A stretch of 64,000 nucleotides of DNA from Utricularia gibba (lineage: Eukaryota > Plantae > Magnoliophyta), in NCBI GenBank assembly GCA_002189035.1, contig NEEC01000031.1, positions 62,001 to 126,000 on the forward strand, in the 5' to 3' direction. Shown piece by piece: positions 31,165 to 40,731 of the stretch. How positions within the stretch are numbered: the stretch's first letter is position 1; every line of letters starts with the position of its first letter. The notes below the pieces were generated by a model, which searched no databases, was not told the origin of the DNA, and saw nothing but the letters and a program-made list of their open reading frames with translations. Position numbers and translations under genes: made by a program.

Positions 31165-33801
31165 TTACTCTCCGTCCATCGGTTTTGAATTTACAAAGCC
31201 CCGGTCCTCATCTGTCAAGACAATCCTATCCAACACAGCAGTCCCTACCGAGCACGACGAGATTATGGAGGGTGAAAGCTGGCTGACTACCTACCACTTT
31301 CACCATCGTATAAACCTCCCAGCCTCGCAATGGCTTCGGTTAGAGCTTGCTCATGGTCCTGATTTTCCAAAAGTTTCAAGTGTTGGAGTTACTGATTGCC
31401 CAGAAAATGAAATCATAGTCTCTAAGAACATGAAAGGTATCTAAAAGATGGTCTGACCTTCAGCACTAACTTGGCTTCCTCTATCTCAACGGGATCGGGA
31501 TGTCTAGCACTAAATAATCTCTCGATCTGCCAGCCAACGATGATGCACTTCAACCCAGGTTCTGCATATCTCCGTATATATGTTAACCAGCGCATACCTC
31601 ATTTATTAGTGTGTCAGTGTGAAGCAATTGGATGTCATCAGGTCCCCTCTTTCCAATGCCGTTCTCTGGTGGTAGGCCCTTTCTTGAATGAGGTTTAGCC
31701 AATCCTCTGCCCCGTCCAGCCCCCGGAGCATTACTTCGACCGAGAGTTCTATTCTTGCTGAGTCCAGATCCGCCATAACCTCCACGATGGGAAATTCCAG
31801 GGTCTTCACCTTCCCATTGTAGGTCTCCGGGAGAAATCTGCAAGGCATTAGCGAAGCATAAGAGTATTTCAGAATATTTTTATGAAACCAGAGGTATATA
31901 GGAAATACCACCAGCATATTAAAGGAATCAAATAGATGGTTGAGTACACACTATGTGATCATTGATTGTTATTAGCATAAAACTTGCACTTCAAAATAAT
32001 CATGGAAGTATATTTACCTCTGAAAGATTGACCCATTCCCAAGTTTCATTAGCAGTACCCATATCATAAACAAGAAAATGGCGACCCTGGAGAAAGTAAA
32101 CAGCCAAATCAAGAACAAGTTATCACACAGGCCATGTGAGATAAGTTACATTCAACCTCCACAGGATTATAATCCATAATCACAGCTTCATAAAAATTAT
32201 TATCATCAGGCCACCTGGTCCGCACTTTCCGACCAATAAGAGAATCAGATTGAGCTCCTTCAACAGCTTCCATTGCATGATCTCCAGCAGCAATACGATG
32301 TCCAAGTTGGCCTCTTCCAGATGAACTAAAGGGATACTGCATTTTCACCCCGGGCGCCCCTACAGGCATCTGCACAAGAATGAACAGATACACAAAATAA
32401 TGATCAGTAGGTGACCAAAACATTGAACTTGTGTACAACAAGTCACACTCACAGATTTTTTCCTTCTACCATTAGCTCCCATCAAGGGTCCACGCTTTCC
32501 AGGGATGAAGATGGCATATTTACTGGAGCCATAGGCTCAGGAGGGTAAGAAGGCGAAGGAGCATGAAAGGATTGAGAAGGTGGAGGCAATGCTTTCTTCT
32601 GTTTCTTACGAGAAGTTGAGATAGAGGGGCTCGGTACAGGTTCTTGGGCAGTTTTACCTACTTGACCAACACCATATAATCCATGTTGAAGTCCAAAAGA
32701 TTGTCTCCACTCCCTGGTACGGGTTTTAGTTTTTTTTTTTTTTTTTTCAACCAAGGGGAACGGAGAAGAATCATTTTAGTACTTTTTAAGATAAAACGGA
32801 CAGAATTGGTAATCAATGCTGGGTCTACGCACACAACCTTATGCTTTGAATTGTTTCATCAGCATTAACCCTACTCAGAAGTTCCCTGTGTTCTTCATTT
32901 GATAATCTCAACTCCCTTCTAAGCTCAGTTATCAAATCTTCTTTCTCCTGAAGACAACACATTTCATTGTTGATGATCATGACAAGAAAAATTATTCATA
33001 CTCTCATTGCATAAGAAGTACCCAAGAAATAGCATCGGCTTGAACTTTAAAGGCTCTTAAAACGGAACTGTAAGCCTCTTGCTCAAGTTGATGAATTCTG
33101 GCCTCTATATCAGTTTCCTCATGCATTCTGACATATGTCATTGAGCCCATTGCTGCAGACTTTCCATTACCAGAAATCCGGCCTGCTCTCGACATTTTGT
33201 TCTGATGTGGTGGGGGCAAATCATCATCAGTTCCTGAAAGGCATTAAAAGGAAAAACAGGAGATTACGCAATTAAATTCACGAAGCTAGCCCAAGCAAAG
33301 AAATCCACTGCACGGGATTCAAAAATGTCACACGATTTGCAATGTTAATAGAACAACGTCAAGTCAGTCCCTTGCATATCGCCAACAGGCATAGTCAACC
33401 TATTATGTAGCTGAAGTCGCTATGAACTCTCAGCATTCTCATCTTTCAAAACAACTGCATTTTTCTAAGCACAAATGCCAAAAACGCAGTCAAAGCACCT
33501 ATCCGTAAATAATGTTTTGATCGTCAAACTAGTAACTGCAGAAATCACTCAAAAAAACAAATAAAAAATGTAAATAAAAAAGTTAAGTTACAGGAAAGGA
33601 AGTTAATCACAGTGGCATTCAAAAGATTTGCCGTCAACGCCATTACGATCAGGACCCATATAACTTCACAAACCCTACCGCCAATACTGCCCTATAATCC
33701 AAATGCTAAACGCGAAACAAACAATATAAACCAAATCTTCCAAAACTATGAAATCATAAAACGAATTACATACCGCTGCTATCGTGTTGCCGGAAATCCA
33801 T
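31165..33801 (-). CDS. EML: EMSY-like (ENT plus Agenet/Tudor) protein, apparent -1 frameshift at 32502-32504
   Basis: [88 protein letters not shown]. One extra C in exon 4 restores PGKRGP..GRRKKS and a phase-0 donor. Confidence 0.92.
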
Positions 33802-34355
33802 AACCAGCTTGTGCAAACCGATTCAGAAACACGGTAGCTATGAAACTCAGCCAGAATAACTTGTAGATTATGCGATTACGCCGGAAGCCCGATCGAAAAG
33901 GCAAAAATATCAGGCAGCACCAAACGAACAGGCCACTTGATCGGCAACGCCAACTTAGATTTCCGCAATTTCCACAGCAAGAGTGGTGACACCGGACGTC
34001 AACAAGTTTATTCAGTTCCGTTAAATGTTTGGCCTGAACTCCGCCGTTGATTCACTAGCGCGGGTACGTTGTTTTGTCGAGTGTTTTCAAACCCGGTTTT
34101 TAGATGAATCCCGAAATTGTATAAATCATATATTTAATTGTAATTAAATATTCATTTCTGTAAATATATCTATTTTTTTAGAATATAAATTTGATATATA
34201 TATTTTTTATTAAACGAGTTACACCACCATAGCACATGCGCGCTATCCACGGACTGAACTCGAACTCGAAGCACCGACATTTCACCAACCTCGCCAGCTT
34301 CTTGGTATCTCATCTTCTTTTACTACTTTTTCTCCTTGGTTGCATGCCCCTCCAT

Positions 34356-34523
34356 TCACAACTGCGGCTGTCTTGCAGCGATCGGGAAGCTGGGGACGAC
34401 GATCTTGGAACGCGGTTCTCCTCCGCCTAAGCTCTTGGGCTTAAAATTCTTCAGAGAAGCATCGGATACGTGAGAAGACGAGAAGCAGCAGAGGAAAGAC
34501 AGCAGGCTTGAAACGCAAGACAT
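34356..34523 (-). CDS. Microprotein A (55 aa) MSCVSSLLSFLCCFSSSHVSDASLKNFKPKSLGGGEPRSKIVVPSFPIAARQPQL
   Basis: Manual translation. TATATATA about 40 nt upstream (34559-34566). Clear paralogy with B, C and D. Confidence 0.8.
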   Translation of the reverse strand: MSCVSSLLSFLCCFSSSHVSDASLKNFKPKSLGGGEPRSKIVVPSFPIAARQPQL

Positions 34524-35821
34524 TTTACTGGCGAGTAGGGGCTCACCCAGGAGATGAGTATATATAGCAGACAGAGCATGAGACCCGAAGTTACTGGATT
34601 GGAGATTAAGTAAAGAAATGTGGGTGGATGGTTGACCTCTTGAAACAAAGTTATCTGGATTTTCTCATGCCTACTGAAGTGAGCTTGATAGTTCTGACTC
34701 AAGCAGGAAGATCTGGTGCACGCGTTGCGGGAGAAAAACAGTTGCGAAGGAACATGCTTTAGACCAGGGGATTAACTTAACTTAATCTCGTTGGATGAGT
34801 AAGCGTGATTACTAAGAAACCAGTAGCATTCAACGCTACTCTATAGAGGCACAAGACTTTCGTCATCCATCCAATCACATTGCGTTGCTTGCTCTCCAAG
34901 ACCAGTAAGTAATAACACGTTATGATTTTTACTTAGGCAATCAGATCAGAAAAATTCTGTGATTTCGTGGCCTCGAAGCAGAGGATTACCTCCATATTAT
35001 AAGCGTGTGTGTGTATATAGTCGAATTAGGGTTATATTCGAGGGGTTTCAATTAATGCATTTATTTGTTGTCATTTCAGTCAACCCCAATAATCACTCCA
35101 CAATCTTTCTAAAAATCGGATAATTCAATTAACCTGAAACCTAATCGATTTAATTCAGTTCGATTAAAATTATCAATTTACACACTTATTCGATTATTGA
35201 TTCGATTCAATTAACCCTAATACTCACTCGTAATCCTCACTCATTAGATAATGATAATAAATAACAATATCGGATGGTATTATGTATGGAAAGTTGTTTC
35301 ATCCATAAAATTCTTTTGTATTTAAAAAAATAAAATAAGTGGATATATCTAGTTATAAAATCAATTAAATATCACTTGATAATAATTTTCTATGAACATT
35401 TTTTTTAAAATTAAACCTTAAAAATAATTGAGTATCTAGTTATATTTGGGGTTTTAATGAACCCTGAATTCATAATACTGGATAAGTATTCCCAAAAACA
35501 GAAATCGAATAAAAAACGTCCACGGCGGCGCTGTTGACCATGGTGGCGGACTCTGCAGTCACCCAGTTCAACTCTCTAGATTCAATACTTCAAGTGGCTG
35601 TATTTTTTTAACAATTTAATACTGTTTTTATCTTATACAAATCGGTATTACAAAGAACTTTATTTTATCGAGAAAAGCACTGAAAGAGCCCACAGGATCA
35701 CATTGAGCCTTCAAAGACATCCATGCCCCTGCAAACGGGGCTACTAACTTCACTTCCGCTATCTATCCCTCTCCCTGTACAGACAGATAGACAGACTTCT
35801 GCATCCCTCTGGGGCTGGGCT

Positions 35822-36001
35822 CTACAGTAGCGGCAGCTGCGTGCTCACCGGAAAATGCGGAACGACGATCTCCGAGCGCGGTGTCTTCTCTCCTTTCCCC
35901 CTGCTGGTGTGTTTACTGTCCGAGGAAGGGACGCCGTCGCAGACGCGGCGGGGAGCCGAGGGGAGGCAGAAAAGGGTGAGCAAACTTGAGAAAAGAGGCA
36001 T
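35822..36001 (-). CDS. Microprotein B (59 aa) MPLFSSLLTLFCLPSAPRRVCDGVPSSDSKHTSRGKGEKTPRSEIVVPHFPVSTQLPLL
   Basis: Manual translation. GC-rich ORF in an AT-rich context with the same N- and C-terminal motifs as A and C. Confidence 0.8.
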   Translation of the reverse strand: MPLFSSLLTLFCLPSAPRRVCDGVPSSDSKHTSRGKGEKTPRSEIVVPHFPVSTQLPLL

Positions 36002-36486
36002 GGCGGCGAGTCTCGATCCTGGATGGAATATGTCTGCGGCTTACAGCTTACGTTGTGGAGTGTGTTGGTATGTTGGGAACTTGGCAGCGTATTTATGGAG
36101 GAGGAGTGGGATGCAAATAGCTCTGAAGTCAGTGGGCTTGGGGAGCAAGGAATGGGAATTGACCATTCCACACATCTTTAGTAACTTTGCGTGCACTAAT
36201 TGTCATTAGTGTGGGGACTAAATTTGAAAATGTAGGTTTTACGGGCCCTTACCTTTTTATTATTTATATTTCGTTTGAGCCCCTCTATTTTTCTCTTTTT
36301 GCACTCATTTGCATACACAGAAAAAAAGTCAAAAGTACCCCCAATACACGAGAGAGACATAAAGCCCTGGTCTGAGCGTGCTCTCCAAGACCGGGTGGCA
36401 TTTCTTGCATTCTCCACGTGTGTTTTTCTCATTATAAAAGGGGGAGTACCTCAGCAGCCTTCTCCACAACACTGACACTAGCAAAA

Positions 36487-36651
36487 ATGTCTTGGGTTTC
36501 AAGTTTCTTCTCATTTCTGTGCTTCTCTCCGCCTCCCCGCATTTCCGATCTGCCGTCATCCGGTCCTACGCCGAAGAGAAAGAAGAGATCACCGGAGTCG
36601 AAGATCGTGGTCATGTACTTCCCGGGGACTCAACCCTTGCCACGACTATGA
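36487..36651 (+). CDS. Microprotein C (54 aa) MSWVSSFFSFLCFSPPPRISDLPSSGPTPKRKKRSPESKIVVMYFPGTQPLPRL
   Basis: Lies within track ORF 36418-36651. TATAAA at 36433-36438, G-box at 36415-36420, and AAAAATG start context. Confidence 0.82.
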   Translation: MSWVSSFFSFLCFSPPPRISDLPSSGPTPKRKKRSPESKIVVMYFPGTQPLPRL

Positions 36652-37044
36652 GGAGATACTGAAGTTTGGGGGGCGTGTACAGGTAACCTTGGAGGGGTCG
36701 GATTGGATCGAGGCGGTGGGGATGACGAGTGCCGTGGTGCCGACAGACCGAGCCATCGAGGAGGCATAGCTCATTAGGCCGTGGTGTTTGCTCTAGAATA
36801 AAAAAGATTGTATGCACTAGCTACTTGCAAAATTTACCTGAATGTGCGTCTGAGGTGCTGGTTCTCTTCTCACCACTTCTTTCGTTCTAAGCTCTCAGTT
36901 CCATTGTAATTTTTGGGTGAACCAATTCAACTTTCAATTTTCTAGTACTTCTTGTTATTTTATACAAATAATGGATTCGATGAGTATTACGATCACACAT
37001 AAAATTGATTAATAGCTTAGATTCTACTAACCCCTCTCCCACTA

Positions 37045-37187
37045 TCAGACTGGTGCATCCCTCTGGGACTGTACCGGAAAATGAGGAACGGCGATCCCCG
37101 AATGGGGGGATCATAACTATGTGTGCACGGTGTTAGTGTCCCGGGGAAGTTGCAGAGAAATGAGGGCAAACTTGAGACACAAGGCAT
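37045..37187 (-). pseudogene. Degenerate microprotein D, paralog of B
   Basis: MPCVSSLPSFLC.. then, after a frame change near G6 at 37104-37109, SGIAVPHFPV. About 28 nt covering the C-terminus and stop of B are missing. 3' flank cccagagggatgc and an upstream block (36128-36170 versus 37196-37240) are shared with B. Confidence 0.72.
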
Positions 37188-38365
37188 GGTGCAGAGTCAG
37201 TGGGCTTGGGGAGCAAGGAGTGGAATTTGACGATTCCACGAATCCTCCTCCCCAAATCCCTGGTCAATGGCGTGGGACTGAAGCTCGAAAAAGCAGCTTT
37301 TGGGTGGTCAAATTCAAATTTTCGATGACTTCATCCCCAATACATGCATACAAATCACGTTTGGAATTAGCATGCGGTCATCAGTATTTTGATACAAAAA
37401 AAGAATTTGTTTTCAAATATTGGTTCATTCCAACTCGGCGCCCTTAAAATAAATATTTTATTTAATCCAAACATGATTGAACCTCTCACCAATTTTGACT
37501 GGTCAAACCAAATGATTGCGCCCCAGGCCCCCATGTTTAAAACAATGGCAAGTTTTATATATGATTTGGTTCCACTTCCATTGATAATGGATATATTTGA
37601 TAGTTAATATAACAAAAAAATAGAATGGAAGTAAAGTTAAATATTATCATTAAAGAATATCATGTTATTCCTTATCTTTACCTATATCCATTTTTTTTGT
37701 TTTAAAGAATTTTTAAAATAAAAAAAAATCTGTCATATCATACCAATGGGAACTTTGGGATGGATGGGCCTGATTCAGGTTTCTATAACATTTGGGCCAA
37801 AGCAGTTCCCTGAAATCCTCTGCAGCACCGTTTCTGCGTGTCCACTGATGCAATCTGAAAAAGCGGAAAAAGAAAGCTGGGTAGGACTCTCTACTGATGT
37901 CCTCCCCCACATTTGCCATTGAGATAAGAGAAGATTATTATAAATCAAAATCTAAATCTAAATAATGAATCTTACAAATTTAATCTAATCTTGAACATCA
38001 TATATTTGTATATATATATATATTATAGTGATGTGCTTGTTGTTCTCAACACATTCACTTCGCCCAATGCCTTTTGATTTCATAAGATGGATTTGTTTCT
38101 CTTTATTTCCCAGATTTTTCGCATATTTTGAAACAGAAGTCAATAAATATTGCTCTGTTTGTTGGTTGTCATGGAGTTTCCAGAACTTTAGGAACAGTAA
38201 ATTGTAACGCATCCTTTGAGCCTTCTTGCATTCCATCTCGATCTTCAAATTTTGAAAACCTCAGAGGGTACGTTTTCTTTTTTTTTTGATCACACAATGC
38301 ATTATTCGTTTGCTGTGTACCCATCACTTCTGAAAGTTTGAGGCGGCTTATTTTCTGCAGACTCC

Positions 38366-40731
38366 ATGGGAAAACAAAACAAGATTCAGAATCAAGGGAG
38401 GCCAATGCAAAAGAATCACGAAGGTGACAAAAGCATGGACATGGAGGGAGATTTCAATCTTAGAGAGACGAAGCCGAGTCTCGGTGGCGGAAGGCTGTCC
38501 GGAAATGATCGTGGAAACGCCTTTGATTTGGTGGAGCAAATGAACTATTTGTATGTGAGGGTAGTTAAAGCCCGGGAGTTACCAAGGATCCGTGATCCGT
38601 TTGTGGAGGTCAAGCTTGGTGGGCTGATGTCCTGCACCAGGTGTTGCGAGAAGACATTCAATCCAGAATGGAATCAAGTGTTTTCCGTATTTAAAGATAA
38701 TATCCAGGCTTCTTATATTGAGATTTCCGTCAAGGAGAGAGTAAACAATGGTGATGATTTGATTGGAACGGTGGTTTTTGATGCGCTTGATTTACCGAGG
38801 AGGGTGCCACCGGATAGCCCTTTGGCTCCAGAGTGGTATCATTTGGATAATCTGCCACATGATCGTGTGAAGGGAGAGCTTATGCTTGCTGTTTGGATGG
38901 GGACACAGGCTGATGAAGCTTTTGCAGATGCTTGGCATATGGATGCGAATATTGTTAATGGAGATGTTGTTACCGGCATAAGATCAAAGGTGTATCTTTC
39001 TCCAAGAATGTGGTACCTCCGCGTTAACGTGATTGAAGCACAAGAATTGCTGCTGACAGACAGAAACAGACAGCATCCAGAGCTATTTGTAAAGGCAATA
39101 CATGGGAATATGGTCTTGAGAAATAGGATTTCTCAAAGCAGAAGCCCTCATTGGAATGAGGACTTGATGTTTGTGGTAGCCGAGCCTGTTGAGGATCGCT
39201 TGATTTTATCTGTTGAGGAAAGAACAGGGCAGGCGAAAGAAGAAGTTTTGGGACAGTGCACCATTCCTTTACATTGTGTGGAGAAAAGGGTAGATTCAAG
39301 GCCTTTGACCTCTAGATGGTATAATCTTGAGAAGCGTGTGGTATCGGAAAACGGTGCGAAAAATGTGATGAAACTGAGCAGTAGGATTCACATAAGGATC
39401 AGTCTGGATGGAGGATACCATGTTCTTGATGAGTTGACACAAAACAGCAGTGATCTTAGAGCAACAGCAAGACAGCTTTGGAAACCTTCTATCGGAGTGC
39501 TGGAATTAGGAATCTTGAACGCCCAGAATCTTGCACCGATGAAAATAAAAGAAGGTGGAGGTGTGACAGATGCATATTGTGTTGCCAAGTATGGACAGAA
39601 ATGGACCAGAACAAGAACAATTCTCAACTGCTTCAATCCCAAGTGGAATGAGCAGTACACTTGGGAGGTTTTCGATCCATGCACTGTGATCACCATCGGT
39701 GTCTTTGATAACTGCCACCTGCATGGCAGAAATGGAGGTGGAAGCATCGATACACGAATCGGAAAAGTCCGTATCCGTCTCTCGACTCTTGAAATGGGGC
39801 ATGTCTACACCCATTTGTACCCCTGCTCGTCCTCACACCTTCTGGTGTGAAGAAGATGGGGGAAATTCAGCTGGCTGTTAGATTCTCGTGTGCATCATTG
39901 TTCAATGTTTTGTCAATGTACCTGCAGCCAACGCTACCGGAGCTTCACTATCTTGAGCCTCTGAGCTTTCAGCAGATTGAGATTCTAAGGCATCAAGCGA
40001 CACAAATAGTGTCTGCGAGGCTGGGACGATCTGAACCACCGCTGCGAAGAGAGGTTGTGGAGTACATGCTGGATGTCGGATCCAACATATGGAGTGTAAG
40101 GAGAAGCAAAGCCATTCACTACAGACTTGGAACATTGATCTTATCCATTGCCAAATACATCAACTGGGTGCAGTACATAAGTAGTTGGAGCAACCCCTTG
40201 TTGACAGTCATCTTCCACATTGTGTTTCTGGCTTTTGTCTGCTTCCCCTGGCTGTTTTCCACCACCGTTTTCATGTACCTGCTGTCGATCGGGATATGGA
40301 ACTACCGCACCCGCCCGAGGTATCCACCTTACATGGATGTTAAGCTGTCTCAGGCCGATACAGCCCAGATAGATGAACTAGAAGAGGAGTTCGACACCAT
40401 TCCAACATCACAGAAGCAAGCTGATATCTTGAAGCTCAGGTATGACAGGCTGCGAGCGATTGCTTCACGGGCGCAGACCGTATTCGGCGACTTGGCGACG
40501 CAAGGGGAACGGCTTTCGAATCTACTCAGCTGGCGGGATCCTCGAGCCACCGGCTTGTTTCTCATCTTCTGCATGGTGGCTTGTGTGTTCCTGTTCGTTA
40601 CACCTGGCAAATTGGTGGTCGTCGCCATTGGGCTCTACATGATGAGGCATCCCAAGTTCCGGACTCGCCTTCCGTCGTCTCCGATGAACTTCCTGAGACG
40701 GTTGCCGGCGAAAACCGACTGCTTGCTGTGA
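38366..40731 (+). CDS. MCTP: Multiple C2 domain and transmembrane protein (FTIP/MCTP), intronless, apparent -1 frameshift at 39820-39823
   Basis: DLVEQMNYLYVRVVKAR, three C2 domains, DTRIGKVRIRLSTLE and the C-terminal PRT_C/TM region (LRYDRLR..GDLATQGER..LLSWRDPRAT). One extra C gives YPLLVLTPSGVKKMGE and a single 788-aa ORF. Confidence 0.95.

Follow-up and report, generated by a model that had tools for sequence, protein, structure and literature searches.

Four small paralogous genes in a 2.8 kb cluster

We analysed a 64 kb stretch of the Utricularia gibba genome (contig NEEC01000031.1, positions 62,001 to 126,000 of the forward strand; hereafter "the window", numbered from its first letter) that contains a cluster of very short paralogous genes, A, B, C, and a decayed copy D. 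As set out below, these are probably divergent members of SPPiDDR, a plant protein family described in 2023 by Hammoudi et al. (bioRxiv 10.1101/2023.12.20.568739). The open reading frames (ORFs) were taken from a mechanical list, which contains all four frames at the following positions (CDS, coding sequence; aa, amino acids; HMM, hidden Markov model, introduced below and applied to the 1639 six-frame segments of the window; > denotes the C-terminal end):

34356-34523, minus strand: gene A (SPPiDDR-like), CDS of 55 aa with tail ..FPIAARQPQL>; in the ORF list; family HMM E 2e-3, third of 1639 segments
35822-36001, minus strand: gene B (SPPiDDR-like), CDS of 59 aa with tail ..FPVSTQLPLL>; in the ORF list; family HMM E 8e-9, top segment of the window
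36487-36651, plus strand: gene C (SPPiDDR-like), CDS of 54 aa with tail ..FPGTQPLPRL>; in the ORF list; family HMM E 6e-6
37017-37187, minus strand: pseudogene D, ORF of 56 aa, first 14 residues in frame, then a deletion or frameshift

The four copies are packed into 2.8 kb, and a tBLASTn search found no fifth copy within the window. B and C stand head to head around a common promoter of 485 bp (36002-36486). An earlier note on this DNA, made from the letters alone, had described three intact ORFs of 54-59 aa and one decayed copy with a shared architecture, and the alignments agree with that description: A, B, and C encode 55, 59, and 54 aa, D is frameshifted, and residues M1, S5, S6, and C12 are common to all four copies. 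The motif (R/H)(V/I)(S/C)D is found in A, B, and C, as is the C-terminal box P(R/E)S(K/E)IVVxxFP, which is followed in each case by exactly 8 residues ending in PxL. Gene C measures 54 aa from its ATG and 77 aa if read from an upstream GTG. Of the C-terminal box, D retains a vestige (..SGIAVPHFPV..) at 37063-37110, in a different frame and with stops ahead of the box.

The genes are transcribed and under coding selection

Transcription was assessed with Logan contigs of four RNA-labelled runs (X5, X7, X8, and X13) mapped to positions 33100-38600. These contigs come without strand, so that transcript orientation was inferred from the ORFs; the library type was guessed, and the run conditions are coded. 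Three transcribed units were found:

34172-34831, minus strand: transcribed unit of A, RNA contigs 34172-34562 (X8), 34243-34558 (X7), and 34260-34540 (X13), reaching 34831 in X5; unspliced
35610-36057, minus strand: transcribed unit of B, RNA contigs 35610-35967, 35625-36057, and 35643-36010; word depth 757 in X5
36482-36968, plus strand: transcribed unit of C, RNA contigs 36482-36931, 36483-36913, 36511-36922, and 36525-36968; word depth 1106 in X5

A, B, and C thus each lie under a discrete, unspliced RNA contig of around 400-450 nucleotides (nt), and RNA depth is zero in the spacers between the units. Pseudogene D is not covered by a contig of its own, as depth is zero over its promoter and 5' end (37148-37883) and the bin at 36964-37147, which holds most of the D ORF, is touched only by the tail of the C contig in X5. 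This on/off pattern of coverage argues against carry-over of DNA. In X5, the depths of B (757) and C (1106) compare with 7-27 for the flanking genes, and the spread from run to run, across coded conditions, is about 20- to 100-fold (757 versus 24-62 for B, 1106 versus 9-20 for C). B and C are high together in this run. Relative to the contig ends, TATAAAA at 36433-36439 upstream of C and, on the minus strand, ATAAATA at 36090-36096 are both well placed, the latter some 35 nt upstream of where the B contig ends. The sequence TATATATA at 34559-34566 was considered as core promoter of A and rejected because it already lies inside RNA contigs. A scan for bacterial promoters and terminators was set aside, this being a plant locus.

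Reading the contigs of X13 against the codons revealed one synonymous variant (D21 of C) and two replacements in the linker (L32V in A and S25P in C). Single-base insertions relative to the window sequence, agreed upon by the RNA contigs of several runs, were seen at 34202 (T), 34537 (G), 34621 (G), 35725 (C), and 36717 (G), all in untranslated regions (UTRs), which suggests homopolymer-type indel errors of the assembly or strain differences.

Nucleotide similarity among the copies is limited to the CDS, and their UTRs cannot be aligned except for a block upstream of B and D. Among A, B, and C, the proportion of synonymous differences (pS, Nei-Gojobori) is 0.63-0.72 versus a proportion of nonsynonymous differences (pN) of 0.34-0.36 (Fisher p 5e-5 to 2e-3). 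The corresponding ratio of nonsynonymous to synonymous substitution rates (dN/dS, or omega) is 0.19-0.35 (0.19-0.30 for A versus B and C) at a dS of 1.35-2.35, which bears out the coding selection that the earlier note had claimed from motif conservation. The C-terminal third shows the same relation, with pN of 0.26-0.38 versus pS of 0.65-0.78. Tandem pairs of the related genes in Arabidopsis, Erythranthe, Dorcoceras, and Fagus that are introduced below have omega values of 0.13-0.36, matching those among A, B, and C.

Profile searches link the cluster to the SPPiDDR family

A search of the four ORFs against Pfam with hmmscan at E<=10 returned zero families, and Rfam had no match in the whole window. 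A word-indexed protein search with the alignment of the four ORFs, using an index that requires shared 5-mers, came back empty, and a full-text literature search for IVVSYFP-type strings found no paper. Exact-sequence look-up found A, B, and C absent from a collection of 15 billion, so that they are unannotated in public gene sets. A protein-language-model search returned two clusters of 65-aa hypothetical proteins of Streptophyta (scores 0.87/0.85 with C and 0.88/0.86 with B), which are probably the SPPiDDR family.

The family was reached through a profile of A, B, and C, which we compared with 1.84 billion representative proteins using HMMER. It matched plant proteins at E 5e-9 to 9e-4, such as P0003, which reads MVVFSAIFSCFFPSSPARVSD...APIVVSYFPVNSQFSRL, and P0004. 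A profile enlarged by these hits retrieved 138 proteins, all from eudicots, of 54-70 aa, without any Pfam domain and named hypothetical or uncharacterised, from sources including Populus, Salix, Fagaceae, Camellia, Rhododendron, Erythranthe, Dorcoceras, legumes, Brassicaceae, Vitis, Daucus, Sarracenia, and Cucumis. Their consensus runs MxLFSxxFxCFxPSSSSRVSD, followed by a K/S-rich linker and APIVVSYFPVNSxLSRL>. An HMM built from 116 of these relatives, with no sequence of the window included, was run against all 1639 six-frame segments of the window. Its three best matches were B (E 8e-9), C (6e-6), and A (2e-3), each aligned from Met1 to the tail. The plant proteins ending in ..IVVSYFP..LSRL that the earlier note had mentioned therefore exist, and relatives of the cluster are found eudicot-wide outside this locus.

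A search of Brassicaceae identified the relative P0129 as AT4G12735, that is, SPPiDDR2 of Hammoudi et al. (bioRxiv 10.1101/2023.12.20.568739), which was also the only paper found by a literature search for the family name. AT4G12735 has a tandem neighbour of 60 aa and lies beside FLA2 and NUDT7, and tandem copies of the family are also found at loci of Arabidopsis, Erythranthe, Dorcoceras, and Fagus. Some database relatives, such as P0001 (113 aa) and a protein of Salix viminalis (87 aa), consist of two SPPiDDR units joined head to tail and are probably gene models in which tandem copies were merged.

According to the published description, the Arabidopsis locus AT4G09215 was misannotated as a long non-coding RNA (lncRNA) and encodes the 59-aa SPPiDDR1, while AT4G12731 is SPPiDDR3. 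The defining traits of the family are a high serine content (24-29%), a conserved N-terminus with a strictly conserved cysteine, and conserved last 15 residues ending in the type 1 peroxisomal targeting signal (PTS1) SRL>. Dicot genomes carry several, often tandem copies, some of them truncated and some ending in SRM> or SLL>. GFP-SPPiDDR1 co-localises with peroxisome markers and is found at the peroxisome periphery after UV-C, mCherry-SPPiDDR1 under its native promoter marks peroxisomes, and a fusion of GFP to the C-terminus gave a signal at the cell periphery. Translation is documented by a translational GFP reporter, ribosome profiling, and reported peptides of SPPiDDR2, with peptides in membrane fractions. 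SPPiDDR1 is a direct target of SOG1 with the motif CTT(N)7AAG, which occurs in most, though not all, described members, and SPPiDDR1 and SPPiDDR2 redundantly slow rosette growth under salt. Proposed roles are competition for PEX5, piggy-back import, or a function in peroxisomal metabolism under stress (all bioRxiv 10.1101/2023.12.20.568739). Independently, YFP-AT4G12735 was localised to peroxisomes (PMC5207514).

The cluster of U. gibba resembles Arabidopsis SPPiDDR1/2/3 and their eudicot homologues in many respects. All are single-exon genes for proteins of around 55-60 aa that are often unannotated or misannotated as lncRNA, and the ORFs of the window (54, 55, and 59 aa) are each spanned by unspliced RNA contigs. 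The order of parts is collinear, from the hydrophobic N-terminal segment with its cysteine through R-V-S-D and a variable K/S linker to the IVVxxFP box with 8 residues to the stop. By a simple count, 82 of the 116 relatives have 8 residues after the last [FY]P, and in most of the others the tail itself includes another Y/F-P; the box of A, B, and C likewise occupies the extreme C-terminus. Tandem clusters with decayed copies, CTT(N)7AAG promoters, paralogues that group by species, and similar omega values are further points in common. Differences are that the window tails read P-[R/Q/L]-L> instead of S-R-L>, that 'APIVVSYFPVNS' of the family has become '(R/E)S(K/E)IVVxxFP', and that the window copies combine a cysteine at position 12, not 10 or 11, with lower serine content and branches 5-10 times longer. 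The head-to-head arrangement of B and C on their 485-bp promoter and the very high RNA level in one run also set this cluster apart.

The ORFs are not chance: their similarity is limited to the CDS, pS exceeds pN, their profile finds plant relatives, and a profile made from these relatives alone ranks B, C, and A first. A, B, and C are real, expressed genes without annotation. Our interpretation is that they are, together with the dead copy D, new, divergent, and fast-evolving members of the SPPiDDR family with a weakened PTS1-type tail, to which we assign a probability of about 0.7. Of the novelty claimed by the earlier note, the existence of real and unannotated genes therefore stands, while their novelty as a family is largely lost to the published description of SPPiDDR, an outcome that the note itself had foreseen.

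Lineage-specific duplication and a disordered predicted structure

A maximum-likelihood tree of 69 family members groups A, B, and C together (support 99/86) and places this clade beside sequences of Lamiales (Dorcoceras and Erythranthe; weak support, 81/81). Their terminal branches measure 0.56-1.32 versus a median of 0.12 and are thus 5-10 times longer. This clade and its long branches indicate that the duplications are lineage-specific and that the genes evolve fast. An AlphaFold2 model calculated with 69 family sequences is essentially disordered (predicted local distance difference test, pLDDT, 64; predicted template modelling score, pTM, 0.18). It contains a short helix at residues 5-11, and confidence is better in an extended C-terminal segment. 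Such a model would fit a ligand acting through a short linear motif and not a folded domain.

SOG1-type promoter elements and a possible mode of action

Upstream of the genes, we found the following copies of the SOG1-type element, listed without strand:

34888-34900: palindromic CTT(N)7AAG CTTGCTCTCCAAG, 365-377 nt upstream of the ATG of A
36137-36149: CTT(N)7AAG CTTGCTCCCCAAG, 136-148 nt upstream of the ATG of B, in the 485-bp B/C promoter
36377-36389: one-mismatch copy CGTGCTCTCCAAG, about 45 nt upstream of the TATA box of C
37205-37217: CTT(N)7AAG CTTGCTCCCCAAG, 18-30 nt upstream of the former ATG of D

The seven central nucleotides are nearly identical in all copies, with the CTTGCTCYCCAAG element upstream of A, B, and D, and C having the motif of B plus the one-mismatch copy. 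Both the B motif and the copy near C precede a TATA-like box by about 45 nt, and the D motif is part of a 50-nt block that is 88% identical to the region upstream of B. Across the window, CTT(N)7AAG occurs 35 times versus 26 expected. CTTGCTCYCCAAG is the sole promoter element to have survived a divergence of dS >1.3, among paralogues that are not independent of each other. Outside the cluster, the 13-mer of the A element also precedes the Fagus homologue P0010, at a distance of 213 nt, and SPPiDDR2 carries CTTGGCCGCCAAG at -158. Within the CDS of A, C, and D, though not of B, there is a further palindromic CTT(N)7AAG at codons 2-6 (S-C/W-V-S-S; 34507-34519 in A, 36491-36503 in C, and 37171-37183 in D). 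It may merely follow from conservation of the N-terminal peptide, or it may be an intragenic SOG1-type site.

By analogy with Arabidopsis, these promoters would be induced by DNA damage or by oxidative or salt stress through SOG1 and other factors; the motif itself is seen here, and its inducibility is extrapolated. Translation would take place in the cytosol, as for the homologues, and PEX5 would then bind the extended C-terminal box with its PTS1-type tripeptide and deliver the protein to the peroxisome. This step was shown in Arabidopsis and seems plausible in the case of C and doubtful in those of A and B. The hydrophobic, cysteine-containing N-terminus might hold the protein at the peroxisomal membrane. 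Such a cysteine or membrane anchor, including the acylation proposed in the earlier note, would be consistent with the reported localisation at the peroxisome periphery and with the SPPiDDR2 peptides in membrane fractions.

Divergent tails and the weighing of alternatives

The tripeptides at the C-terminus are PRL> in C, PQL> in A, and PLL> in B, and the 116 relatives end in SRL (100), SLL (3), SRM (2), SQL (1), or a few others. By codons, the LPRL of C is one nucleotide from the LSRL of the family, and after this change from serine to proline, we infer that A and B each lost the arginine. PRL> is among the plant PTS1s with experimental validation (PMC3427985 Table A1; PMC9542071 Table 1). Proline at position -3 and glutamine or leucine at -2 are singly allowed in validated signals as well (PRL, PKL, PSL; SQL, SLL, ALL; PMC3427985, PMC9542071). 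Several points nevertheless weigh against a peroxisomal SPPiDDR assignment. The SRL> of 100 of the 116 relatives is absent from A, B, and C; PRL> belongs to a low-frequency class that is more reliant on upstream context (PMC9542071 Table 1); and PQL> and PLL> are missing from both consulted lists of validated plant PTS1s (PMC3427985 Table A1; PMC9542071 Table 1). Cys12 of A-D lies two residues downstream of the cysteine column of the family, which holds F or L here, and the first cysteine is at position 10 in 92 and at 12 in 4 of the 116 relatives. Serine content is 22% in A, 19% in C, and 15% in B versus a family median of 24%. Finally, the evidence for a peroxisome-lumen location in Arabidopsis rests on N-terminal tags, which would mask a signal at the N-terminus. 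C keeps the low-frequency PRL> and the tripeptides of A and B lack validation, so that we predict weaker import of C and have doubts about that of A and B, even though the C-terminal box is otherwise conserved. That A, B, and C go to peroxisomes at all would follow by analogy with SPPiDDR1 and SPPiDDR2, the members for which it is known.

The same tails could mean that these proteins, while derived from SPPiDDR, have departed from the peroxisome altogether, with the PTS1 decayed (certainly in A and B) and the IVVxxFP box and N-terminal cysteine helix repurposed, for example to bind a membrane partner in the cytosol. Proline at -3 in all three tails, the absence of a basic residue at -2 from A and B, whose tripeptides are not on the validated lists, the constraint still acting on the C-terminal third (pN and pS given above), and branches 5-10 times the family median all speak for such a departure. 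We nonetheless consider it unlikely, because validated plant PTS1s contain each of the deviating residues singly, the -2 position elsewhere in the family is taken by the very same R, L, and Q, the terminal leucine and exact C-terminal position required for PEX5 binding are retained, and C still ends in PRL>. A different reading takes the proteins for precursors of secreted peptides, in which residues 1-17, a hydrophobic core followed by a c-region rich in Pro and Ser, would be a short signal peptide cleaved before R/H-V/I-S-D, the variable K/S linker a propeptide, and the conserved last 16-19 residues the mature peptide in the apoplast. This three-part layout is like that of small signalling-peptide precursors, and the automatic UniProt names of several relatives ("Secreted protein") and of AT4G12735 ("Transmembrane protein") point the same way. 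N-terminal fluorescent tags would have hidden a signal peptide in Arabidopsis, and the C-terminal GFP fusion gave its signal at the cell periphery (bioRxiv 10.1101/2023.12.20.568739). However, judged by eye, the hydrophobic stretch spans around 11 residues, is interrupted by serine, and lacks a charged or basic n-region, and in B and C residue -1 of the hypothetical cleavage site is a proline. The invariant C-terminus of the family is, moreover, the strongest plant PTS1, and mCherry-SPPiDDR1 was seen on peroxisomes under its native promoter (bioRxiv 10.1101/2023.12.20.568739). The precursors of CLE, IDA, PIP, and CEP peptides likewise pair a hydrophobic N-terminus and variable middle part with a conserved C-terminal motif of around 15 aa in tandem families, but their signal peptide is clear and 20-30 aa long and their motifs abound in Pro, Gly, His, and Asn, whereas the N-terminal stretch of the window copies spans around 11 residues and the tail of the SPPiDDR family is an experimentally supported peroxisomal signal. 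We therefore regard secretion as quite improbable.

The earlier note had instead proposed leaderless, possibly S-acylated precursors tethered to the membrane and released by a protease, in the manner of the PROPEP phytocytokine precursors. The window copies are small as well, show no obvious canonical signal peptide, and carry a conserved N-terminal cysteine and a basic linker ahead of a conserved tail, and the protein-language-model search ranked the Pep1_7 cluster third. Yet its score was just 0.70, behind the two Streptophyta clusters at 0.87 and 0.85. PROPEPs are around 75-110 aa long, and the active Pep is a 23-mer of Gly, Ser, and basic residues, whereas the proteins of the window end in a hydrophobic IVVxxFP box with a PTS1-type tripeptide, show no sequence or profile similarity to PROPEPs (no match to PF17232, Pep1_7, at E<=10), and have no Pep-type motif at the C-terminus. 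Their homologues, in addition, reach peroxisomes through SRL> (bioRxiv 10.1101/2023.12.20.568739; PMC5207514). This proposal thus found no support and appears very improbable to us. That the transcripts could be non-coding and their ORFs untranslated is scarcely credible: the ORFs are indeed below the usual cut-offs for lncRNAs, and the SPPiDDR1 locus of Arabidopsis was long annotated as non-coding, but dN/dS is 0.19-0.35 with saturated dS, similarity stops at the borders of the ORFs, a family recognisable at the protein level spans the eudicots, and the GFP translational reporter, ribosome profiling, and SPPiDDR2 peptides document translation of homologues (bioRxiv 10.1101/2023.12.20.568739).

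Neighbouring genes

Next to the cluster lies a gene with multiple C2 domains of the MCTP/QUIRKY/FTIP type at 38366-40731 on the plus strand. It is read as two ORFs that overlap and differ in frame (38366-39850 and 39847-40731), and this break may be an assembly frameshift or real. Its 5' UTR has an intron of 93 nt (GT..AG, 38267-38359) that is backed by an RNA contig. One Fagus relative of the cluster is named "protein QUIRKY-like" though no MCTP gene is nearby. This name prompted the idea of synteny with the MCTP-like gene, which we rejected as the homologues in Arabidopsis, Erythranthe, Dorcoceras, and Fagus have no MCTP gene within 10 kb. On the other side, a minus-strand gene at 33100-34067 has an exon at 33773-34067 spliced to 33100-33232 across an intron of 540 nt (CT..AC on the plus strand), with an alternative joint at 33201/33234 seen as loose ends in three runs. 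This spliced transcript ends around 100 nt from the 3' end of A.

Significance of the cluster

The compact genome of U. gibba gains three expressed genes and one pseudogene that had been overlooked by filters on ORF length, and the recently described and poorly understood SPPiDDR family is extended to another lineage. No new class of peptide hormones is revealed by this finding. Its remaining interest lies in the systematic replacement of SRL> by P-x-L> in an otherwise constrained and highly expressed cluster, a natural experiment in which an invariant signal has turned into PRL>, PQL>, and PLL> while the adjacent box and the SOG1-type promoter element persist. These tails bear on whether the conserved C-terminal box is a peroxisomal address alone or something more. 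As the whole cluster has swapped SRL> for P-x-L>, with two of the three paralogues lacking the basic residue at -2 and the box still under selection, the tail might function beyond peroxisomal import, a tentative idea that we hold to be doubtful. If true, the tail of 16-19 residues would serve, for example, a PEX5-independent partner or a tuned competition for PEX5, and one or two nucleotide changes could be enough to retarget SPPiDDR proteins away from the peroxisome lumen.

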